Of a stretch of DNA of 64,000 nucleotides, positions 23,225 to 41,310 are shown piece by piece. Under the pieces are notes generated by a model that was not told where the DNA came from, made no database searches, and was given only the letters and a program-made list of their open reading frames with translations. The stretch comes from Bugula neritina (Eukaryota > Animalia > Bryozoa): the NCBI GenBank assembly GCA_964035545.1, contig OZ037773.1:7965751-8029750 (forward strand), written 5' to 3'. The number at the start of each line of letters is the position of its first letter. Position 1 is the first letter of the stretch. The position numbers and the translations under genes were made by a program.

Positions 23225-26200
23225 TTATCTTTTACTAACCATTATAAGAAAAGCTCTGATGAATTGAATTGCCCAGTCTTGTTGATTATTTGCAAACTGC
23301 CGGACCTGAAAATGAAACAAACCATGTTATAGTATTATATAGTATATTAGGATATGACACAACTATACCTTAGTAATATATTATGTGATCATATTATGAT
23401 ATAATATTAGTGTGACTAGAATACTAATTAGCTAAAAGTTGGAACTGTTATAAAAACAACAAATGGTCTGTGTCTGATACTTCATGCCTTCCAATTGTAA
23501 TATATAAATTCAGTTATTGCTTGTTATAGTTATGATACAAGTTTATAAGCTACATATTACATAATTGTGTATAAAATGCATACAAAATAGCAAATATTTT
23601 AACATGCAAGTTTGTTTACCACACACAGGAAGTGCGCAATACTTTTATCCAAAATTCATTTTATAAATTTGTACATATTTTTGGACTCACAAAGTTGACA
23701 TCATTTCCATTTTCTGGGCAGCGTTCTGAAATAGGGCCACATGATGGGCGAGAATTTACAGTAAACTCTCTCTGTAGGTGTAAGTCAGCATTTAGCATCA
23801 TACGTCCATCATTCGCTGACCATTGGGTGAACCTAAGAGAATCACAGGTGAGATCATTTTATACTGTGTATACAACATAGTAATACTATAACTATAGTGT
23901 TATATAACTGCAGTATTATAATACTATATTACAATACTACAATATAAAAATATCATAACATAATGCTACAATTTAATAATACTATAATTCATTACTAAAA
24001 TATTATAATAATATAATACAATAATACTATAGCATAATATCACTATAATACTAGCTTGGACACCTATTGTAAAATGACATTTATACCTTTGCGGTGTTAC
24101 TATCATATTATAATTTATTATATTTATGATATACTATTGTTAATTATATATAATTATAATATTGTTTACTCGTTGCCAGGTGCATCAGTAACTCTCCATG
24201 TTGTTCCTAGCATACTTCCGTAATAAGAGTTGTCTAGAGTGTGAGGGGTGTTATCCCACCGCCCCTCAAACCCACTGTTCTCAGTCCTACAGACCCCCAG
24301 TGAATGTGCGCCTGGAAAATAAGAGAACTTTTTAGGTCAAAGGTTATATTCTGCTAATATGGCAGAATATGAGAGTGATCAAAAAGCTGTACAATAGGCA
24401 ACCAATCTGTTTTACAAGCTAGTAGAGTCAGTTTATACAAATTAGTTGAGTTTTTGTGCAACATTAAGACTATATTAATAGACAATATTTCAATTTTCTT
24501 AGACCTTTTTCCTACTTATTGTAAAATAAATAGGAAATAAATTTTAAAAGTTTGGAGAAAATCTAGAACCAATAGCAATGCTCGTATGCTATTCATATCA
24601 CCAGCAAACTCACTTGTCGTCATGACAACCACTACATTGACTTGATAAATGCTACGTGGTTGCTGCGTGCTCACAACTCCAAAAAGTGTATGTCTGCTGA
24701 TGAAAGTTTAACAACTCTTTTAAAAAAAATTATACAAGTTAGCATTAGTTACTAAATATAAAGATTTAATGATCCTGTATTAAATCTATTTGTTTGCAGC
24801 AGTCATGCAGAGTCAACAAACTCTGTCTAAATAGCCTAAGCTTCAGAGTATTTACATATTTATTAAGGAAGGTATTTTAGAGCCTTCAACATTCACAAGT
24901 TTAAGTACTTGCAATGACTATGAGCAATGGCAGTGTATAATGATATGACAATACAACATGAGGTGTAAGCAAACGTTACTGCCAAACATTGTAATGCCAA
25001 CAAGTTATTTTATAAGCATTGTTATATAAACATAATATGACCTACATTTTATAACAAATAATCTGAACTCTTTAAAGTTTTCAATTGACTCCTATTATAG
25101 GCCTACAGTTTTTATATATTGACAAGAGCTTAACATATTTCAATTACAGGCATAACAGGATTAATGTCTCATTTTAAAAGATATATCCTGATTGCGGAGC
25201 TTTTGCAGTATATCCTGCAGTCTATAAAGTACTCATTTATCTGCCTCTACTTAGAGAATGACCATTAATCACTCTAATCCCTCTTCTGTCAGTACAACTA
25301 TTTCTATAATCAACTATCTATAGCAGTTGCAAGTTCCTCAAAACTAATTTCGTTTCTTAAAAAATGCCAAGACTTCCTGTGAGGTTATTATCTCAAACAC
25401 AATTTGGTTTATGTGTCCTGTATTTTTCTCACTCTCCTAGCTTTAATATATCATTGATTCATTGCTTTAATCACCTTAAAGTCATCAAGTCTTATATAGT
25501 AGCCAAGGCAACAAGCTGATATAGAGGTGATGTGTAGACACAAATTAGTTAAAATTATGTATTATGTTACATATTATATTATATTACATTATGCACTAGG
25601 GTAATATAGGATAAGAACGCGTCTTACCCATTAAAGCAACAGCTAAACCTCTGCTGGGGATCCCAAAGTGTGACATCAAGAACTCTATAGCATCTGTATT
25701 TTGTCCCTGCCAAGGTCAACAAAGGGTCATGGAAATGGTACATAGTCAACAAAAAAGTGCTACTCAATTCAATTTGAGATAAATGTTATATTGCTACAGA
25801 TCCTGAGTGACTAGTAATTCATATGCAACAATTACAATCCTAAGCCATATTTGAGGATCTTAGAAACAATTTAATAAATTTTACAACTGGATATTTAAGA
25901 GTTGTCTTATCTTTTTTGTTTTTAAACTTTTACATTCTAAATTTAATCTGCAAAAACATACAAACACAATTAAACTACTCCAATACCTTAATTAGTATAC
26001 AACACATACATACTTCCACATTTTTATTATGTTTTATATTATTCAACCACTAATTATACTATCTACTAGTATACAGGATAACTTTGGGAGGGGGGAGGGG
26101 GAGGGGATTAGATTATTCTCCATGAACAAAGAAAAAACCAGGGCAACAATTACTTTATACACCTGCTAGCCTTTTTTGTATAAAAATTTCTTTATAATTA

Positions 26201-29200
26201 CATGGAAACAAGTAATTAGTGAAGATTAGCCTCAGAGTTAAAAAACCGACTATAAGAATAAAAAATTTGGGTAAAGTTTAGTCTAGTCTTAAATAAACAT
26301 CACTGCACCTCAAGCTATTGTTATGTGTTTATTCACTACAATTCATTTACCTGTGGGAAGTTAAAAACTTTTAAATAGTTGGTTGGGTCACGGCAAGAAG
26401 TCCTTCCAGTTGTAAACTCTACTGTCCTGGGACCGGGCCCACCTAAAAGGAATATACAAACATGTGTCTTGTCAAGAGCTGACAACTACAATCAACTTTG
26501 CTGATAAACTACCACATTTCTGGTCTAATAGAATCTTTCTAAACACACTGGGCTTATTATTTATAAGTTCAAATTATAAAAACTTATAAAATTTATTTAT
26601 ACTAAAATACTTTGTAAGATCGTACAAGCAGCAATGAAGACGGCTAAGAAGCTGACAAGAAAATTAGTCAGTTTAGACTTGCAAATGTTAAAGCATGATC
26701 TTACATGACATTTTAATTACTTTTAATGCATATTTTAAACTTTCTAATGATTTTTTAATAAACAGCTATGTTAGCTGTATAGGTTGATATTCAGAAATAA
26801 AAAGGTTTTCTTCAACATTCACATGATTACATATATTATATTATATAAAATGCTATTTCTTCCAAAAACTAGATTCCTATGCCTAAAGCAATTATAACTC
26901 AAAGTAATAGAAATTTTACAGAAACCCACATTATATAGAAACTAGGTTATGAGTAGACTTTTTGCTAATTTATTTAAAATGTAGTCTGGGATCTTACCAT
27001 TTCTTCTCATGCCATGCTCTACTGCTTTTGTCCCTAACAAAACTACAAAGTCTGCCAAAGAGATACCTTGTTTTGCCTGGTTCCTCCACAGAGCCTGTAC
27101 TTCCCTGTAGGAGCCTATCAATCCTGCAATAACATTATAAGTGGTAGTTGTTTTCTTTTTTTCTGTCATTACTCCGCTTTTGCTAGATTTTCTGCTATTG
27201 AGCCTAAATTAGATTTGTTTTACTTTTGCTAATAGATTACATCTACAAGGTTTATATATAGAAACATTTCTTCTACCAAATCTACTATTGAACATCTCTA
27301 TGCCGTTTCCAAAAGCAGTAGCCTATGTACTCGTATAATGAAGTTGTTTAACTATGGAATTTTTAGCTAAATATAGAATATTTCAACCTATTATAGAATA
27401 TTTATTTGTTTAGTATAAAGTTAATAATTTATGAGGAAATGAAATAATAATATAGAATTTTTTTTCAATGAGTGAATGAGTCACGGTTATAGAACTTCTT
27501 GTTGCTATGAGTTATTTAGTTATTATAAATTGATTAAAATGTTGCTTCAATACAAAATAAGTAGTTATAAATAACACTAATAACACTATAATATGTATTT
27601 TTACTAACATATAATGACAATAATATAATATAATAATAGTTATATAATGTCATATTTATTACATAATATTACACGATGTAGCATTACAATATATATATCT
27701 ATTTTGAAATTATAATAGCAATATAATTCAATGTTAGCCAATAAAACCTTGAATCTAATAAAATAAAAGTTGACAGCTTAATATTTGTCATCCCATTTAT
27801 ACATCTATACAACCATAAACCCACACAATTCTATAGTCATTGTAAATTGCACAGCATGGTTTATGTGATCAGAAAAGATCAGAAATAATGCAAAAATACT
27901 GTGAAATATTTTTTCTCCTTTATACAGCTTTCTTTAAAATCATTTTACTAAAAAAATATAAAAGTTAAAACCTACAATCAATAAATATAAAAGCTAAAAT
28001 CTAAGGAGTATTATTGCTATTATTAGGTTCTTTTCAGGTTTTATTAGGTTCTATTGCTATAGAAATTGAAATCTGCAGCTTTGGGAGATCTATAGAATAC
28101 GTTCAGAGTAAATCATATTTGCATTAGAAGACTCTACATGAAGACTGGCACAACCTAATCTGATTATACTGTGTCATAATTCAAGATTAAGTATAAATAT
28201 AGGCACCACATATCTACAGCACGAACTCAATGCCATTAGAGAGATTATTACATTGACATACTAGTCCTGCATATCTTAGAATTAAATGACGTCTAAATCA
28301 TTATTTACACCCAGGCTATTATAGAGCCACTCGTGGCATATTACCATAACATAGATAATACACTTATAACTCAAGTTATAAATTATCACTTTACAGAAAT
28401 TAGAACTAATATTAGATTTGAAATAAATCTACTCAACACCTTACAGTGTTTAAATGTCTTTCACTGAGTAGGAAATTAATTTATTTTATTTTAAAGTAGT
28501 AATTTATATCAAAGTGTTGGAAAAATGCCATTAAGGTTAATGAAATGAAAACTACTTTCAGGTTAATCTGCAAAAAAAATGCATTTTCATAAAAAAAGCC
28601 ATTTGATAAACGAAGATATACTTTTATGCTACCAATGTTTTCATTAAAATATTGATATATCATCATTTGGGTTTGCTTGAACCATTACAAGTGTATTGAA
28701 TGTATTATTCGTGAACTTGTACAAAATCAGCTAAGACTGGGTATGAAGTAGTCAGTTTTAGCAAACAAAGCATCTATCGTAGCTAAACTACCTCAAATAA
28801 AAAGAGTAAATAAACCATCTTGAAGGTTGCTTGGCTACCAATAAAGACATTTTACAAACATGCCATAAATCACGTAGAAAAAGGAACTTCGGAGAAAGAC
28901 TTAATCTAATCCGATGATATATTATTGAGTGGTAATAATCTTAAGTGAGTATAGTATAAAATAGGTAGCTAAGAGTGACAGGTGGAGATGATCTCTTAAA
29001 CCTAGCCACACATGCAGCTCTTGGGTGTACCCAATATAACTTGGCAATCTTAGATGGTGAAAATTCTAATTATAAAAAAATTCTCTATAAATCAACTTAA
29101 AAGACAGACGCTAATGTAAGTTCATACATAAAGTAGAGTGACAAGTTAATTATTATAATGGTTAATGTTTAAGATTTGAGACCAGCTTTAAATTCTAGAC

Positions 29201-32200
29201 CCAAGATTATCATCAAGAAAGAGTACATCAAGTTACCTCCAAGTACCAAAATGCTGCTATGAGAAAGTGTTATAGAAGTAGGAACTGCAAGCCGATGCTA
29301 CTTTGCTACGCGTGCCGAGTGGTTAACTGCTAAAATGTCAATTAGATGACTAATAAGCTGCTGGGATAAAAATTATATTTTATTTAAAAGTTGACAAATT
29401 TTAAAAATTTCAATTTCAACTCATAAACGTCCATAAGCTCTAGTAATAATTGTTAACCTTGCTGCAGAAAGCTACAAACTTTTTACTTCACTAAGTAGAC
29501 TAATAACCATTTGTTAAATTATTTATTATGTAATACTAAATTACTATTTTAATACAGGTGAGCTATGGTTGCCAAACTTGTGTCTTTTAAGACAGAAAGC
29601 AATACATCTAAGCTACTGTTTCACAGTGTATTCTGATCACCACAAGCAAGTGATCATGAACTAACATGGGTGCTCATGTCACCAACCTTCACACTACTTA
29701 TAGCTAAGATGTCTTTGTTGGTATTAATATGGCTGCATGCATGGTGCACACATGTTGCAGTTTGTTGACACATTATTATTAAACTGTGTAGCTTTGGCAG
29801 TTTGAACAAGTGCCCTATCCTGACACTTACTCACAGTTTCTGAAATTGGTATTGCCAGCTCATGATCCAAAATGCATTAATTTACTATAAAAATAATACA
29901 ACATTAAGCTATCAGAATTGTAATAGCATAAAACTTACCTTTGTTTGAGGGGGTGTTTGTATTGATACATCCATCACACCCTCCAACGCAACTGTGAAAC
30001 ACTAACTGGACCATGTTAGGAATTCTTTCAGCCTGGAAAAAACAGTTTTGGCTTACTTTCACAGCTACAACAAGTTTTTCAATCAGCAAGAAAGCATAAG
30101 TTTACAATTGATGAAGAGAAAGATGGAAAAGCTAAATGTAAATTCTAAGTCTTTCAACAGGAAAGTTAAAATAGTCTTTTAAAGTCCGGCAATATTTGAA
30201 CTGAAATTCACGCAAAAGCAGTTAAAAGTAATAAAAACAAAAGTTCCAGCATTATTTGAATACGAATAAACACAAATTATACTGACAAGGTTTTCTTCCT
30301 GTGTAGTCTGTACAACTCAAAATTAGTTACGTACATTAAAGTCTTTTAATCTGATTAAATTATATTATTGATTGACATATTATGTGAACAACACTATTTA
30401 AACCATCTCTACCAGTTCTTTAAACCTATTTAAATTATATATAATATATATTTAATGTACGGCACCATCTGTTGCCAATCCACAGGTAAAACGTATTTAA
30501 ATAACGAGTGTCATGGAGTAATTTAGCTTTATGGAAAATATAAAGTGACAGGCTGTAAATGTAATAACTCACAAAGCTATTACCCCACACTATAGGTCAA
30601 GTATATAACCATTGTTATCTAATGTTATGCAACATGACATGGAGTCTGCAATCTTGGTAAACTTGCAGAGTGAGTTGTGTACAAAGATGGAAGAAAGAGA
30701 ATTTGTCACGTTTAACCTGTAAGCTGAGGTCAACATTAATCAGCCTGCCTTCTTCCATACTGAGAGTTGCTAAAGAACTGCTAAAAAGGTGGTAATCTGT
30801 TTGCTGAGAGGCCTAGAGGACATTGCTACTAAATGGAATCTGCTCTGGGTGAAATACACTCATTTAGCAGCCAGTAACAAAATTGGTTGTATAAAATTAC
30901 AGGGCAGAATCTGCAGTAAAGAATATCCGAATTGATAGAAAACTTGGCAATAGACATGCAAGCTGAGACGTACATTTTCATCCAGCCATCTGGTCACTAT
31001 GCTGGTAATTTCATTCAGGTTGGGGGCTCCAGGTGGAGGCCCGCTTGATACTCTGTTAGCTGGGACTCCTTTAGGATCCTGGCTCTTTGGCACACATCTA
31101 CCTACACAAAGGGAACATTTCCTATGTACTTTCAAACTGACTTTGTCTGCTAAATTTGCTTTAAAGTCAAGTTCAATTTCTGAGTACTGATGTTTAGTTA
31201 TTTTCTCAATTAATGACTATAATCAGTAAGAATCATTTATAATAAACAGTATTGTCACAGTATTATCACAGCACTGTCACAGTGCATAGTCACAGTGTAT
31301 AGCCACAGCACTGTCACAGTGTATAGTCACAGTGTATAGTCACAGCACTGTCACAGTGTATAGTCACAGTGTATAGTCACAGCATATAGTCATAACATGG
31401 TAGAAAATTACAACATCTATAATAAAAACTATTAAGGATATTATACACTATACCTCCTCTTTTTCTTCGCTGATTTGCTCCACATGATGAACTACGGCCT
31501 CTACCCCCTCTGCCTCCACCAGACCTAAGTCTAGTCTGAGATCTTGATCTACCAGTTCTACCAAACCTATTTCTTCTCCTCACACCTCTGGTTGACTGGC
31601 CACTGTATTGTACGTAAAATTGCAGGACAAAAAGTTGCATAAAATACACAGCATTGGTTAGCATATAAAATATGCCAGTAATGTAAAAGGTATAACTTTT
31701 AGAACACAGTCTATGATGCAAAATCTGCTTTGACTGTATGAGTAGCCCAAGTGAAGAGTCAGGTTGCAATGATCATCAGAACAATCTGTATGAACACCAT
31801 GCAAAGTCACCCATTACTATACACACTTAATATTTGGATACTAAGGCTACTGTTTGCACTGCCCAGTGTAGAAGATGCAATCACAGGTTATAAAGCTTAT
31901 AAAAGTACTAACGGAGACAGTTTTCATTTTTTCCTGAAAAACCCCATGCAATGATGAAAACCACATAGCTCTAAACTGGTATTCAAGTGAGAAAATATGA
32001 AACTGTTAACAGGGAGCTGTTATGAAGAAGAAAATGATAAGTATTAAATAATTTTTATCTATTAAAGAAATATTTCCTTTTATTGCAACAGGATTTGCCA
32101 AATGATTTCCTAATCCTAACAGGTTAAAGATTAGAGTATGTTTGAAATATTGAACCCATGAGGTGTTAAATCAACCTAGAAACTGTATCACAGCTCACTA

Positions 32201-33332: not shown

Positions 33333-34439
33333 ATTCCTGTCACAGACACTTTCAAGACCAGCTTAGCCCAGTATTAAGAACCAAATGCTAAATTTAAAGA
33401 TATAGGCTGATGATCCCATTAAAGTGTGGCACATACCACAAGTAATCTAGATTTATAATTGTGTCTTGCCTATAAATCAATTGGATTAAGCAACATAACT
33501 CAATAGCGAGCAGATTGCAAAGATAGACGAGCAGCTAAACGCTGATCAAAGAAAGCATAATAACCATTTTATAAATAACTTGCGGAGCTTCAAAAAAAGG
33601 AAATCTTCTTTAGTATCCGTACAAGGGTGTGACAATATTTCCATTTGAAATAATTTGCTAAAGAAGGTCTGCTGTTTGCTTTTCAGCATATAATATAGAA
33701 AAGTAGAACTTAGTAAGATACAGCACCATAATGCATAACACCATGTGACTTAGTATAGTAAAATTTGGGATAGGGGTCAGAGTTTGGGGCTTGAGAAAAT
33801 TTAACATCAACGTGCCAGTTTTACCTACTTTTCCATTTGTGCCATTATTACCTGTGCCTTTTTACCTAATATCCTAAGCTTTATAGCAGGCAAATTTCAA
33901 CAGCAGTGTAGTATAGCATAAAATTACATAATTTTGCTTAACATAACATTGAGTATAGACTGGTGTAGTTTTGTACCAGTTCTATAGTTTGGCATATTTG
34001 CCTCATGCAGTATATATACTTAGATAAGCACAAGAAACAACAGAGTTTTTATAAAAGTAATGAAAGTATCCACACCATACTTCTAAGATGAAGTTTTTAG
34101 CTTCTTCTATTCACAGAGAGGTAATACGAAACTCATACCGTCAAATTCCTTTATTAAAGTTGTCTCCTCTTTCTTGTTAGAATTATTGATAAGCATAAAC
34201 AGCTTCAAACTTGTATGAATTTTTATACACCAGTTTATTACAAAATTCAGATACACAACCAAAATTGAATCGGAAAACCGCAACAATATATTTGAATATT
34301 GTATGAAAATGATGAATTATTTGAATGACTATATCCAACAACCTGAGTAATATAACTTAATCACAGGGGCACAGCAGCAGTTAGAAAAGTACAGTTTTGG
34401 GTGCTAGCAATAAAGAATACTGCATTCTGATTATAAACA

Positions 34440-34530
34440 TACATTGATATAAACCTACACTGATTACAAACATAGACTGATTACAAACATAGACTGATTA
34501 CAAACATAGACTGATACAAACATAGACTGA
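34440..34530. repeat. 17-bp minisatellite (GATTACAAACATAGACT) just downstream of the ABCG-A stop
   Basis: About 4-5 tandem units visible. Confidence 0.8.
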
Positions 34531-34588
34531 TATAAATGACTAAGCCATGACTGGAAATACAACTGCACAAATCGACTGATTGAAAATA

Positions 34589-37500
34589 TCACGAGAGATG
34601 AGGTTTCCTGACAAATCGCAAGAGCAGGTAAGTAATAGTTTTGAGTATAACAGCATAGCCAATCAGAACGAGGATATGATAATATATTGTCCAGCCTTCT
34701 GCAGCCAGAGTGTTGGTAGCAAGAAGCTCTTCTGTGGAGATGTACTTGATCACCTCTGATTGGTTGGTAAAGGAGAGAGCTGATTGGTTGACAGAGTTCA
34801 AAGCAAAAGAGGTTCCTTGACAAGAGGAATAAGCACTGCGTTCAGAGTTGCACCTGAAACAGCATCATAGTGAGCTATATGGTGACTTGAGTAAAGCTAC
34901 TTAAAACCGAGTAGCCAAAAGATAAATAATCGTTGCTGTTATTCATTAACCCACAATTAGTACATGACGCTGTCGGTCTATAAGCAGTCAACTCTAGAAT
35001 CAAGTTACTTTCCTATAAACCAGGTGACTACAGCCATATAGGAGGTCATGGCACAGTATTGTAACGCAAAGCTTTGTAAAATAACACCCAAAGTCTGTAC
35101 TAAAATCGGAACAAAATTGCCATCAAATCTTTAACAAATATGTGGGGTACATCACGCCACTTACAGCATTTATTGTAGTTCCACAAACCTGATTCTTGTG
35201 CCAGAGTATTGCACGTTGAGGTTAGCGTAGAAGCCGTGAGAGATGAAGGACACGTATTTCATCCATCTGATCCAAAATGGCATGTAAGTAGTGAAGAAAC
35301 CCCCGGCGGTCATGAACACCAAGATTGTTGTACTGGAGCTGGCTAGAGATGGACTCAGGTCTATGAAGGTAGTGAATGCTAATCCTCCGACACCCTGTGG
35401 TGATATAGTAATGATATATACAGTGTAACACAGTAATATATACAGTATAACACAGTGATATAGTAGTAATATATACGGTATAACGCAGTAATATAGTAGT
35501 AATATACGGTATAACGCAGTAATATACACAGTGTAACACAGTAATATATACAGTATAATACAGTACTATAGTAATGTATACTATATATATAGTATAACAC
35601 AGTACTATAGTAATGTATACAGTATAACGAATACAAGAAAAGCATATGGTTTGATAATAGACCATAAAGTTTATATGGAATACGACTTAAATGCTAGTTG
35701 ATACTAACGGAGAAGATAACTCCAAACAGAGTAGCTTGTAGTGTTATTTTTATAGTCATTGACGACACAAACAATGCAGCTATTTATACCTGCTTCCACA
35801 CAGAGATCTAGAAATTAATAGAGAAAAATATATCTATGAAGACTAGAGAAATGGAAACAGAAAATACGTACGTGCGTGACGATGGCGCTGAGCAGAAGTA
35901 GCCCCAACATCTGGAGGTAGTCTACGAAGTAGGGACTGAGGCCAGACAGCCAGAATATGATAGTGAAGAAGATGCTAGCCAGCCCAAACAAAAGGGGTAT
36001 TTCGCTAAGATTCTTTGCTAAGTAGTAAGCAGACAGTCTGTAGTATCCGGCTAGACGCTCCTTATTCACTACGACTCGGTCATTGAAAGCTGTAAAATAT
36101 CATACTGGATGATAAAATATAATTGTATGATATTTACTGAGTAGCATTACGGAACAATGTAACGTAATATGGTATGATATATGAGTCATATAACATAATA
36201 CAACACAACACGAAGAAAAAATAATATGATATAATATTATCAGATATAATATATTTCAAGATAATATAGTGTCATATAGTAATAACAATACAACAGCAAG
36301 ATAACTAAGAATATACAGTGTAATACTTGATGCATGATGTACATATCAAATATATGATGGCATGGGTGAACAATTTCAAACTTCAATAGATTTAATGACC
36401 AAATTACAATATTCTATACTTAGGTTCATAACACCCAAGTTTCTAGTGAAGCTGTATTTAATGTGTTTAATAAACCACAACGGAAAGTATAATATAAGTC
36501 ATGTTACCTGATAACACTGAATCCAGCATAAATTCAAATGAGGTGAAGACAAGAAAGAAAAACGCCTACAGAAGAAGTTAGCCGCCATTATCAACAGACA
36601 CAATAAAATCGTCACCGAAAAAAAAATGCAAAATATTTTTATTGCATGAAATGAAACAGAAGTTTGACTAGTCACCAACTGTACGTGACGAATTACAACT
36701 GTAATACGTGGTAGGTTACCACAATACTTTAGAATAGTTTCTGCTCTTATTTTCTATACAAGAAATAAAAGCATATCTTCTGTATAAAACAACACGGAAA
36801 CAATAATTACCAAATACAAATTTAAAGAAAAACAGAGATTTCAAACAGCTGACCCATCGCTTGAGGAAACCTAAAATAAATTCCTGTATTTGAAACTCAC
36901 AACTCCCTGACGGTTAGAGATTTGCCTCTCAGTGGGTTCAATCTGAAACCACATCATCCCTATGAAGACAGAGAGACTGATGAACTGCATGATGTGCCAC
37001 TTGGAGTATATCCTGAAGAAGGAGTACTTCACAGACCTGAAAGAGTCGACCAACACAAACATTAACGTCAGGTGGGAGTGAGTTACAGCTAGAAACATTC
37101 CACAGTGTAAGTACAAGCATGTGTAGGATAAGTAGTCCACTTCTAACACATTGTCAATCTCAAAGTGACTTAAAAGTCACAGGACACCTCGGATATTGAA
37201 GTCTATCTAATACAAAATTCTAATCACAATGATTAGTCCTTAAAACTAAACTAAATTCAGTTTGAGACTCAATTAATAAAGTAGCCTTTCTGTATCCTTT
37301 GTTCATAAATTTCCAAGTACTTTAGTCAGCATAGTATCAATCACATAATATTTCGTCAAACTTTTGAAATCAGAACGATATAATCATAATTGACCATGTC
37401 ATACAAGAATGACTCACCTCTGGAACAACACAGAGAACTGGAGGAAAAACCCTGTAGGCCATGGGGCCTCGTACTCCTCTCTATACTTCGTGTAATCATC

Positions 37501-40500
37501 GTCAATCTCCATTTCATCAAACTCAGTCACATGACCTGAAAGATAGAGTTGTTGCATGGCAATCAGTTGTATATCAGTAATTAGTATCACCAGCTGTTTA
37601 GTTCTGTTAGTTGAGAGTTTGGAACAAGAATGGTTTACAAAAAGTGGTCAGTAGCTTCTTTCGTTTGTAGTTTCAACCAGCAACAGTCTTAACTTACAGA
37701 AGGAGCACATAGTAGCCAACCATATTGTTTTGATAGTCACTATGATAATGAACTTACATTACAACGTTATGAAAACTTATCAACAAAACTTATGATCACA
37801 CACTAGCTTTCATTATGCAGTGTTTAGCACATTTAAACTACTGAACAAAAGACATAAACAATGAAAGAGATCCTCCAAGTAAACATTGCACTCTCTAAGA
37901 TACGTACTTGATAACTTGGGAAGTACTTTTTTCTGCCCAGCCACGCCATTTGAAGCCTCAGTGTTGGGTCCTTCAGAATTGTATGGAATTTCACCATTCA
38001 TATTCACCCAATTATCTTTTCTGAAAATCAAATTAGATACAATAATATTTGTCAGTAGAGTGATTGAATGGAAGGAATTGGGTGATAAGGCAGCATAGAC
38101 AGAAAAAATGCAGGGCAAATGAAAAGCAAAGAAATGCTAAAATTTATGTAGCTGATTGGTGAAAGCTGATTGGTTTACTGGTGAAAGCTAATTGGCTGAT
38201 TGGTGAAAGGTAATTGCTGACTAATGATTGGTCGTTGTTCTGAATTTTAATGAATTTGATAAATCAGTTTAATAGCTTCTACGGTTTTAGAGCAGATTTA
38301 TATTAATTTGGTTATTTAATTAATTTGGTATTTAATTAGGCAATACAACTCACAGTCATTTTCTGAGTAGTTCTTTCAATAAATCTTTGATGGAAAATAT
38401 AATTTATTAGATAAAGCAACAGAATATACCTGGGAGCTAAAGTCAATGGCAAATCAGTTTCACTAACAGACTGATAACTGTATGTAACTATCAGTGGGTT
38501 AGCTTAGAGTACTTATGCCATAAATAGACTCATTAAACTATATAAGAATTAGATCAACTCTGTATATTTACATATTAAGACACCACACAGCTTGCTAACA
38601 GACAGTATTGCATATCTATATGTACAAGATTATGAGAGTTTGAGTAGTAGAGTTATCCCACCTTTGTTTTATAGCACCTTTAACTATAGTATCTCTCACA
38701 TCCTGAGCTCCCTTTACTTGGTCCACTACAATATATACATTGTGTAAACTATAAGAGACAGTGATCAGTAACTGATAAAAATTATACATTACTAACAATA
38801 ACAACACTTCATTCTACCTAGCTGATTATCTACTTGATGATACTTACGTATGTGATCAGCCAAGTTGTAGTTAGCAGGGCAGGGCAACTCCAGAGAAGCG
38901 AAATGTTGAGCACAATTTTTAACTTCACCAAAATACGCCATTTTACCGTCACAGAGTAGTAATAGCTTGTCAAACATGTTGAATATTTGACTTGAAGGTT
39001 GATGTATAGATGCAATCAATATCTTGCCTGAGTCTTTAGCAAACTTTTTTAATGTGGTACACAGACTAAAAGCATTTGAAGAGTCCAAACCAGATGTGGG
39101 TTCCTACAAAACACCATAAGTTCCGATATATAGTAAGGGTGGGTATACTTATGTCTAGTAACATGAGAGCAGGTTTCACAGGCTATATATAGTAAGGGTG
39201 GGCATACTTACATCAAGTAACATGAGAGCAGGGTTAGTTAATAGTTCACAGGCTATTGTTGTTCTCTTTTTCTCCCCTCCAGAAAGCCCTCTCACATCTG
39301 TGTTACCAATCTCTGCAGAATTAATGCATTTATAACTGAATGAAGCAGCTTCAACTTCATGTTTATTCAACTATGAAATAATAAACATAAAATTGACATT
39401 TAAATATATATAAATTATAGAAGCGCATGATGAACCACTTTTACAGCACCCTGCTTAAATAAGAACTAGCCAAACAAAAGGCATTGTGGGACAGGGTACA
39501 TACTTGTGTGGAGGCACTTCTCCATATCCAGTGCATCTACCAACTCCATGATTCTTTGCTTCTTTTCAGCTCTTGGCATGGATCCAGGAAGCCTTAGCAA
39601 AGCTGTGAACTGAAGGTATATACAGATATGACATGACACATGAAACATGTAATTGATAGCCATACAGCTATGACATAACACCCAAAGGTGAGGGTTTGTT
39701 AGTGTACAGCTATACAAATGACATGTTTCCATATGTGATAGTAAAGTATTGTCTCAAAGTACACACCCAGAGTGTTTCCCAACAGGTCAGATCTTCAAGG
39801 AATATATCTTGTTGAAGTACATAAGAAATCTTTCTCTTCAGTTGCTTAGTTATAGGTCTAGAGTTCAAGGTCAAAGTACCGGACTCAATGGGCCGTCTTC
39901 CAGCTAAACAGTTAAGTAGAGTTGTCTTCCCAGCTCCTACAACACACAGCTGTAGTATTGGTTTTACTAACTGACAATTTGGGAGACCATGGAACAAACA
40001 CAGTAAAACAATTGAGCCAATTTTCTCGTAGAGGTTTTGTGAGAGAAGTGAATAAATAATAGCCTAAATTGAAAATATGCACTAGAGTTGAACATTTTTC
40101 TTAGTAGCACTAAGGAATAGCTGAGTTTAATTGGACAGAAATGAGAACAAAACATACTCTGCACTTGATTACTTCGCAGTAAATTAACTGAAACATTCTA
40201 TTGGTCAGATAAAACATCAAGTCACAAATTATCATTTCACACAACTTTCATTTTATCTAATAGTAATTGATATATGCTCTAATAACAGTTTTTGCGAAAA
40301 ACAAATTTCTCATCTGAAGAGATGAAGTTTGATTATGTTAGATGAATAACTGATAATCCTCTGTTTTATTCAGACGACTGACCTAGCCTGCAGTTCCTTA
40401 CCATTTTTCATCTGATACCCCAGGCCTCTTAAGACCACCCCAGGTCCAGGAGCACTTGCTACAACTAGACATCTAAGGCTACCTGAGGTGTAGATTAACG

Positions 40501-41310
40501 CATAAACCATCACCAATCACCCTTCACCTTAGCATATACTAGTCACGACTAAATATAGAGACTTAAAGTAATATTTACCAGAAGGACCCATAATGGCTAC
40601 CATCTCCCCAGGTTTAGCCACACCATACACATCTTTTAATATCTCTCTCTTGTCTATTTTAACACACAGGTCTGTGAACTTCAGTTCATAGCTTGCAGAA
40701 AAGTAGTGTTTGGCAGGGGATTTCCTATACAACATAACATTGAATGAGACATGGTGATTCAATGTAAGTCACATACTATTTAGTGTAAGTCACTCATGAT
40801 TTAGGCTAGGTTACACATGATTTAATGTAAGTTACATAGAGGTAATTAGAATAAGACACCTAATCAGCAGGATGGAAAACTACACGATAAACTCATCTAT
40901 GTTCTCATACTGATCTTTTAATGTTTGAATAACAATATTTATTGAAAATAAAATTAAGAAAACTATATTTCAAGAAAGCAAAATATTTTAGACTCAAATA
41001 TAAACAAGTTAAAAGTTTAGAGTTTGCTTTTATAAAAAATTTAAACATGCTTCGAGAAATTATTTTCTCAATTTTTTAGCACAATTACATATTTTCATAC
41101 AAAAAATATTGTACTTTGTAAGAACTACGTGTGCATAGGTACAGCTAGAGTATGATGTAGAGAGCTAAGAGCATGCAGCTCTAAGTGAGCTCCAGTGAAG
41201 GCCACATGGTGATTGTTAGCTCAGACAGATAGAGGTTAAACCACTTACGGACACGACTCCAAATGGTCAGATGTTGGAATAAACACGTGAAGTTCAGGAT
41301 CCTGTTCCAT
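34589..41310 (-). CDS. ABCG: ABCG half-transporter (NBD-TMD), paralog A, ~672 aa
   Basis: 14 exons: 41310-41249, 40724-40579, 39936-39767, 39609-39504, 39312-39212, 39103-38848, 38725-38662, 38020-37908, 37535-37418, 37036-36901, 36565-36508, 36089-35872, 35394-35189, 34853-34589 (2019 nt). Walker A GPSGAGKTT, Q-loop YVLQQD, signature LSGGEKKR, Walker B LMLLDEPTSGLD, H-loop [22 protein letters not shown]. The first exon is the least certain. Confidence 0.93.
35397..35630. repeat. Intronic minisatellite (ATATACAGTATAACACAGTA-like) abutting an ABCG-A acceptor
   Basis: Tandem degenerate units; a homologous, longer array lies in the same intron of ABCG-B. Confidence 0.85.

Follow-up and report, generated by a model that had tools for sequence, protein, structure and literature searches.

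Glutamine at the distal arginine position of a predicted haem peroxidase from the bryozoan Bugula neritina and its conservation among paralogous genes

Results

A nine-exon peroxidase gene on chromosome 9

We analysed a 64,000-nucleotide (nt) stretch of the genome of the bryozoan Bugula neritina (assembly GCA_964035545.1, contig OZ037773.1, positions 7,965,751 to 8,029,750 of the forward strand), which lies on chromosome 9 (C9:7965751-8029750) and is called the window below. Its minus strand carries a gene for a haem peroxidase of the PF00141 type in which the arginine expected four residues ahead of the distal histidine reads as glutamine. A preliminary description, made from the sequence of the window alone, had proposed a peroxidase gene of this kind with an open reading frame of 11 exons. 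Tracing the exons by splice sites, reading frames and tblastn with bryozoan homologues bore out a real PF00141-type gene in an animal genome. The 11-exon frame was not reproduced; we found nine coding exons from 31664 to 23225 (minus strand), amounting to 1095 nt and 364 codons, with no internal stop and with GT..AG borders at all eight introns. The count is one of coding exons, as untranslated exons are invisible without RNA. The exons are laid out in the same way in the genes for three proteins of the bryozoan Watersipora (P0013, P0016 and P0063). The features of the window gene are listed here.

31454..31664, minus strand: exon 1, with a tentative start ATG at 31664; open frame with a GT donor; the encoded N-terminus, MLTNAVYFMQLFVLQFYVQYSGQ, is hydrophobic and signal-like and runs into a stretch rich in Arg and Gly
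30974..31101, minus strand: exon 2, helix A region, ...RCVPKSQDP...PNLNEITSIVTRWLDEN; splice sites and phase fit
29939..30032, minus strand: exon 3, the distal exon, AERIPNMVQLVFHSCVGGCDGCINTNTPSNK; Gln-x-x-Phe-His helix, Cys-x3-Cys-Asp-Gly-Cys loop and the Asn that is the usual bonding partner of the distal His
30006..30008, minus strand: CAG, the Gln codon at the distal-Arg position (His minus 4), from translation and per-locus codon comparison
26998..27123, minus strand: exon 4, (G)LIGSYREVQALWRNQAKQGISLADFVVLLGTKAVEHGMRRN; from tblastn of bryozoan homologues and splice sites
26351..26442, minus strand: exon 5, a conserved GR..C block, GGPGPRTVEFTTGRTSCRDPTNYLKVFNFPQ; from splice sites and tblastn
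25628..25706, minus strand: exon 6, GQNTDAIEFLMSHFGIPSRGLAVALM; from splice sites and tblastn
24170..24311, minus strand: exon 7, (G)AHSLGVCRTENSGFEGRWDNTPHTLDNSYYGSMLGTTWRVTDAPGN; proximal His, Asn at the position of Arg172 of ascorbate peroxidase (APX), Trp of GRW and cation-site Asp (LDNSYY)
23691..23832, minus strand: exon 8, (E)FTQWSANDGRMMLNADLHLQREFTVNSRPSCGPISERCPENGNDVNF; contains MMLNAD, whose Asp would bond the proximal His; from tblastn and splice sites
23225..23305, minus strand: exon 9, VRQFANNQQDWAIQFIRAFLIMVSKR, then a TAA stop; from splice sites and tblastn

Both ends of the model have parallels among the homologues. Exon 1 is akin in composition to the N-termini of Watersipora P0013 and P0016, exon 2 has a counterpart in P0013 (residues 60-92) with identical start and end points, and homologues of exon 9 terminate at the matching point (...AFLKMVEH, ...AFLQMVSK...). 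A similarity reading IEKLVVAVKV just upstream of exon 3 was considered as coding sequence and rejected: neither an AG nor an in-frame ATG lies between the TAA at 30104-30102 and this similarity, related sequences carry a 1-nt deletion at 30037, and the true upstream exon is that at 31101-30974. In these relatives the deletion shortens the polypyrimidine tract ahead of exon 3 by one T. Intron 1 contains a tandem repeat at 31249-31392, made up of a 37-nt unit present 3.7 times (92% matches) that overlaps a 13-nt unit, GTCACAGTGTATA, present 9.3 times.

The distal position is encoded as glutamine

The preliminary description had stated that the distal arginine is replaced by glutamine, and this was confirmed at each level of comparison. 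Positions 30032-29939 translate to AERIPNMVQLVFHSCVGGCDGCINTNTPSNK between a ttttccag acceptor and a gtaagt donor, and the residue four places ahead of the distal histidine is encoded by CAG at 30008-30006. Exons of the window gene were searched singly against Pfam and PDB. Exon 3 aligned to the class III peroxidases 4usc and 1fhf (PGLIRMHFHDCFVRGCDGS) with the glutamine opposite their arginine, although the match was weak (E ~1). A much stronger alignment was available for P0008 (KAF6032613.1), a paralogue from the same species, which matched the Leishmania peroxidase 3riv at E 3e-16. Here ...IQLVFHT... stands opposite ...IRLAWHE..., placing the glutamine on the distal arginine, and the other catalytic residues match. 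The glutamine lay opposite the distal arginine in every alignment that we made. Against PF00141, exon 3 alone scored 15.7 bits (E 0.013) versus a cut-off of 27 bits, and the homologues P0008, P0016, P0011 and P0013 scored 61-83 bits.

We also obtained an AlphaFold model, which is of the paralogue P0008 (residues 75-346, from a 29-sequence alignment) and not of the window gene product. It reached a predicted local distance difference test (pLDDT) value of 93 and a predicted template-modelling (pTM) score of 0.91, and its best PDB matches were the Leishmania peroxidase and yeast cytochrome c peroxidase (CcP), at TM 0.73-0.80.

Glutamine-type copies make up nearly half of a large gene family

A profile built from homologous bryozoan and annelid sequences gave 78 exon matches at about 24 loci of the B. 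neritina genome, and we count at least 24 loci of the peroxidase family. Reading the distal exon at each locus revealed 11 Gln-type and 13 Arg-type copies. The Gln-type loci are C5:0.57M, C7:11.18M, C3:10.93M, C3:10.94M, C3:30.28M, C3:31.30M, C1:0.05M, C1:12.13M, C4:19.50M, C9:8.16M and the window gene, and their codon is CAG at nine and CAA at two. Far from being an isolated case, the window gene shares its glutamine with ten other members of this family. Over the 13 residues around the site, the Gln, the Phe, the His and a Cys alone are invariant among the 11 copies. In all 11 the acceptor site lies 7-8 codons before the glutamine; the Arg-type exons of B. neritina remain open further upstream. 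In this analysis we defined a bryozoan Gln-type peroxidase group by three characters, all of which the window gene has: Gln at His minus 4, an intron of phase 0 lying 7-8 codons upstream of it, and membership of the bryozoan clade described below. The tandem clusters at C7:3805000-3826000, C7:13778000-13794000 and C3:14921000-14948000 consist entirely of Arg-type copies, and the tandem pair at C3:10927000-10943000 (10.93-10.94M) is Gln-type.

An intronless Arg-type copy, ...RAAFHDCVGGCDGRINL..., was seen on an unplaced contig (L004, G000:C139:25497-28846; match at C139:26997-27764, minus strand). The match contains six in-frame TAA codons and no stop of another type, which looks like a ciliate-type genetic code; the contig is for this reason probably from an epibiont or contaminant rather than from the bryozoan.

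Relatives outside the genome and the placement of the window gene

Among named proteins, the closest are KAF6032613.1 of B. neritina and several 'putative ascorbate peroxidases' of Watersipora subatra. Word searches with P0013 and P0008 returned matches only from Watersipora, Owenia and a few environmental proteins, and the window protein itself was not among them. A word search with the open frame around exon 3, within the length limits of such a search, gave no candidate. Among the database relatives covering the site, 41 of 44 read Arg-His and three read Gln-His, namely P0008 from Bugula, P0016 from Watersipora and P0011. The last of these is encoded on an environmental contig of 1406 nt (L043) that reads CAG at the site and, being intronless, is most likely a cDNA. 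A further protein, P0158, is the Watersipora orthologue of P0008 and grouped with the Gln-type proteins in the tree. The glutamine is thus kept at 11 B. neritina loci, in Watersipora proteins and in P0011. Two other relatives, P0005 (Owenia fusiformis CAH1780591.1) and P0001 (Prymnesium parvum KAL1499200.1, 2731 residues), have at least two peroxidase domains per predicted protein, perhaps through tandem fusion or through the merging of gene models.

In a quick maximum-likelihood tree, with supports given as SH-aLRT (Shimodaira-Hasegawa-like approximate likelihood ratio test) values from that search, the bryozoan sequences formed a clade (99) that held a Gln-type clade (95) and a tandem cluster of Watersipora Arg-type proteins (98). 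Its neighbours were sequences of the annelid Owenia and of marine protists (Tetraselmis, an acantharian and a cryptophyte), apart from the RLAWH-type class I peroxidases. Exons of the window gene were added as separate rows, and all seven that were tested fell in the bryozoan clade; such single-exon rows do not fix the position within it. Summed over exons 3-9, the window gene was 49-53% identical to the members of the Watersipora Arg-type cluster and 46-49% identical to proteins of the Gln type.

The arrangement of these genes along the chromosomes is also similar in the two bryozoans. In B. neritina about 165 kb separate the window gene from the P0016-type gene on the same chromosome, and in Watersipora the Arg-type array (57.89-58.10 Mb) and P0016 (57.34 Mb) share one chromosome. 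Since the window gene, with its glutamine, and the most similar Watersipora cluster, with its arginine, have this linkage and the exon layout in common, the Arg/Gln site may have flipped more than once. A neighbouring ABCG gene, as present beside the window gene, was not found in the 10-kb flanks of three Watersipora genes, and no finer synteny was gained.

Sequencing error and RNA editing as possible explanations of the glutamine codon

CAG differs from CGG by one transition, so that an assembly or sequencing error hiding a true arginine codon (CGG or CGA) has to be weighed. Four sequencing runs held the stretch. One (X1) is from the same species (86% of words), and the others (X5, X6 and X2, the last a 'symbiont metagenome') come from relatives of about 91% identity, which presumably belong to the known B. 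neritina sibling-species complex. The comparison was made at the level of contigs, with 226 further differences beyond those listed. Contigs of X1, X6 and X2 cover exon 3, and none of the listed differences falls at 30006-30008. The CAG codon given in the preliminary description is accordingly upheld by the X1 contigs, which come from an independent run on this species, as far as the listed part of the differences goes. Moreover, ten other loci of the genome have CAG or CAA at the site, as do the Watersipora genes and the cDNA-like contig. We give an error next to no weight. Over 29864-29949, X1 displays two haplotypes: of a depth of 145, about 70 have the variant letters, which are also present in X6 and X2.

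Arginine could also be restored in the messenger RNA through adenosine-to-inosine editing at a Q/R-type site, which would turn CAG or CAA into CIG or CIA. All 11 glutamine codons are one edit away from an arginine codon, and in the minimum-energy fold AUGGUCCA is paired with intron sequence some 130 nt further downstream. However, this stem is just 9 bp long, and shuffled sequence folds about as well (z = -1.0). The intronless, cDNA-like L043 reads CAG, and editing would require suitable structures to have persisted at 11 diverged loci. Editing is therefore highly improbable. By comparison of sequences, we conclude that the glutamine is real, inherited and conserved, like the catalytic histidine, across old paralogues and two bryozoan families.

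Other catalytic residues and class assignment

The rest of the haem pocket is retained in the window protein as judged by alignment. On the distal side the Phe-His pair (QLVFHSC) and the Asn of SNKGL are present. Three proximal blocks, GAHSLG, GRW and LDNSYY, all fall within one exon (exon 7, 24311-24170), for which phmmer against PDB returned CcP (1krj, E 1.3e-7) and APX (8djr, E 6.5e-7) and a search of representative sequences gave 145 matches. In these alignments the His of GAHSLG is the proximal histidine and the Trp of GRW stands opposite EGPW of CcP and APX, in line with the preliminary description, which had called both intact. The same description took the Asp of LDNSYY for the proximal aspartate. 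This was a misassignment: it aligns with FDNSF/Y, the proximal cation-site aspartate of APX and CcP, and the aspartate that bonds the proximal histidine is instead found in MMLNADLHL of exon 8, a block homologous to MMLNSD of P0008, which in turn aligns in sequence with MMLPSD of 3riv. The distal aromatic residue with its His, and the proximal His with its bonded Asp, are thus in place, and the superfamily's arginine at His minus 4 is absent, the residue there being Gln.

The combination noted previously, of a class III-like distal Cys motif with a class I-like proximal half, held up in the alignments to 4usc and 1fhf, to CcP and APX, and to 3riv. Of the class III characters the window protein has the Cys loop; it has Gln for the Arg, Ser for Asp43, and a proximal Trp in GRW. 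The published signature of APx comprises Arg38, Trp41, His42, His163 and Arg172, and that of APx-R comprises Arg38, Phe41, His42, His163 and a residue other than Arg at 172 (bioRxiv 10.1101/2020.08.18.255851). In the window protein Arg38 and Trp41 are replaced by Gln and Phe, and the Arg172 position (proximal His +9, AHSLGVCRTEN) is Asn. Since the Arg172 position is Asn and Trp41 is Phe, the protein is not an ascorbate peroxidase, and by these signatures it is neither APx nor APx-R. 'Putative ascorbate peroxidase' is accordingly the wrong label for the Gln-type bryozoan proteins.

A basic residue elsewhere in the pocket might make up for the lost arginine. The Arg of GRW was considered in this role and rejected, as it is confined to the window gene, C4:19.50M and C9:8.157M, the other Gln-type copies reading GQW, GAW or GPW. 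At the level of the alignments, the positions corresponding to the distal pocket showed no conserved Arg or Lys.

Constraint on the window gene

A large and partly tandem family invites the view that the window gene is a redundant paralogue drifting toward a pseudogene, its catalytic arginine already lost. Several results weigh on this side and against a functional, altered enzyme. No single exon of the window gene reaches the Pfam cut-off, and exons other than exon 3 are without a match there. The residue after the distal histidine, a Ca2+ ligand in class III peroxidases, is Asp in four of 11 Gln-type copies versus 12 of 13 Arg-type copies (Fisher p=0.008), and this loss could mean that the distal pocket is degenerating and not retuned. 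Exon 7 has three non-synonymous changes among the differences listed (Ser>Thr, His>Leu and Asn>His), and the relative X2 differs at 18 of 191 positions in this exon, about as in introns. Synonymous changes make up four of the seven listed exonic changes (p=0.07 versus neutrality), so that selection on the window copy itself is weakly shown. Finally, the search for sequencing runs returned only sets of DNA contigs, which show no splicing.

Other observations speak against decay. All nine exons are open, the eight introns have GT..AG borders and every other catalytic residue is kept. The four differences listed in exon 3 (30003, 29997, 29982 and 29949) are third-position synonymous changes, and none of the 21 differences listed for X5 in 25257-25832 falls in exon 6. 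The glutamine is invariant in 11 diverged paralogues and in two bryozoan families, which would not be expected under drift. We regard a decaying copy as quite unlikely.

Proposed activity of the Gln-type proteins

As the best explanation, we propose with moderate confidence that the gene encodes a PF00141 haem protein, probably secreted, with slowed or altered activation of H2O2. With the other haem-site residues in place (His, Phe and Asn on the distal side; His, Trp and Asp on the proximal side), haem b is most likely still bound, and the distal histidine most likely still serves as acid-base catalyst for H2O2. Engineered distal-Arg mutants of other peroxidases (CcP R48, horseradish peroxidase (HRP) R38 and Coprinus R51) stay active and are slower. 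By extension from these mutants, formation of Compound I and stabilisation of the ferryl state would be slower or differently tuned without the positive 'pull' of the arginine, and the pH or substrate profile might be altered. The changed catalytic role put forward in the preliminary description appears to be a fair inference, given a glutamine that is genuine and conserved. The setting might be extracellular oxidative chemistry such as cross-linking of cuticle or adhesive, or defence; secretion and such an extracellular role are a guess that we make from the N-terminus and the conserved cysteines.

One could instead suppose that peroxidase activity has been given up altogether, leaving a haem protein that binds or senses O2, NO or sulfide, acts as an oxidase, or has a structural or extracellular-matrix role. 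The charged 'pull' residue is gone, the residue after the distal histidine is relaxed in the Gln-type copies, and with Asn at the Arg172 position the ascorbate site is missing, as this would predict. A simple binder, however, would have no need of the distal His with its Asn partner or of the proximal His-Asp-Trp triad on the 'push' side, all of which are kept, and the activity remaining in the engineered mutants likewise argues against it. We consider such a protein unlikely.

Returning to a peroxidase with altered H2O2 activation, we tentatively raise the possibility that the change from Arg to Gln was an adaptive switch rather than a defect. It may have given rise to a natural class of extracellular haem enzymes that activate peroxide without the 'pull' arginine of the Poulos-Kraut scheme and are maybe tuned to alkaline seawater, organic hydroperoxides or other substrates. 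Literature searches turned up neither a description of a natural distal Arg-to-Gln variant nor one of plant-type peroxidases in bryozoans. To our knowledge, the distal arginine is regarded as essential and invariant in classes I-III, and its role is known from laboratory mutants. Eleven intact Gln genes beside Arg-type paralogues would provide matched natural pairs for probing the contribution of the arginine and any compensating changes. Bryozoans, including the major fouling species B. neritina, appear to hold a large, unstudied set of putative secreted haem enzymes.

Comparison with related and engineered peroxidases

The Gln-type proteins P0008 (KAF6032613.1, Bugula), P0016 (XP_067939208.1) and P0158 (XP_067933049.1, both Watersipora subatra) are annotated as 'hypothetical protein' or 'putative ascorbate peroxidase'. 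They share with the window protein the distal motif PN(L/M)xQLVFH(S/T)C(V/I)GGCDGC, the proximal motif GRWDNT, the exon layout and the overall length. Since they are only 46-49% identical to it over exons 3-9, we take them and the window gene to be old paralogues and not orthologues. In its HSC and GGPG/GQNTD/FTQW blocks the window protein is closer to the Watersipora Arg-type tandem cluster (XP_067938850.1, which is P0013, together with P0152-P0155 and P0063) than to these paralogues. It is with this cluster that the summed identity is highest (49-53%), and the nine-exon layout, an intron immediately ahead of the (I/L)P in the distal exon and linkage to a P0016-type gene are also in common. 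The cluster differs in having Arg (CGA or AGG) at the site and two extra residues (NT or ST) within the Cys loop.

Among characterised classes, class I (3riv, yeast CcP and APX) gave the best matches in both sequence and fold, with His...SGFEGxW...DNSY including the proximal Trp, and MMLxxD with the His-bonded Asp, in common. Class I enzymes differ in having Arg-x-x-Trp-His and in lacking the Cys loop and a signal peptide, and APX needs the Arg172 that is Asn in the window protein. Class III (HRP, palm 4usc and soybean 1fhf) shares the distal Phe-His-x-Cys...Gly-Cys-Asp-Gly pattern, through the weak exon-level match given above, and differs by Arg38, Asp43 and the absence of a proximal Trp, whereas the proximal half of the window protein is class I-like. 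APx-R agrees with the window protein in Phe41, His42, His163 and a non-Arg residue at 172; it keeps Arg38 and is a plastid family of plants and algae. A metazoan-only clade of secreted putative APx has been described that includes HvAPX1 of Hydra viridis, AqAPx of a sponge and CaroAPx1 of a sea louse (Zamocky et al. 2014, PMC4232752). Its members are likewise PF00141 proteins of animal genomes, mostly predicted to be secreted, a likeness drawn by description only. That paper mentions no Arg-to-Gln variant (neither 'glutamine' nor 'distal arginine' occurs in it).

The closest parallel at the residue itself comes from the engineered distal-Arg mutants, and the CcP R48 structures 6ccp, 7ccp and 1dj1 were among the fold matches of P0008. 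The same residue is replaced in both, but the mutants are laboratory changes in enzymes optimised for arginine, whereas the bryozoan glutamine is the inherited and conserved state of a group of genes.

The neighbouring gene and tandem arrays

Directly upstream of the peroxidase gene, at about 35000-41000 of the window (minus strand), lies a multi-exon gene for an ABCG-type half-transporter, the exons of which match ABC_tran, ABC2_membrane and ABC2_membrane_7. Two tandem arrays were found here, one between the two genes (34427-34531, a 17-nt unit present 6.3 times) and one in the 3' part of the ABCG gene (35414-35628, units of 22, 33 and 39 nt). The latter yields long open frames rich in Tyr, Ile and Thr that are probably non-coding.

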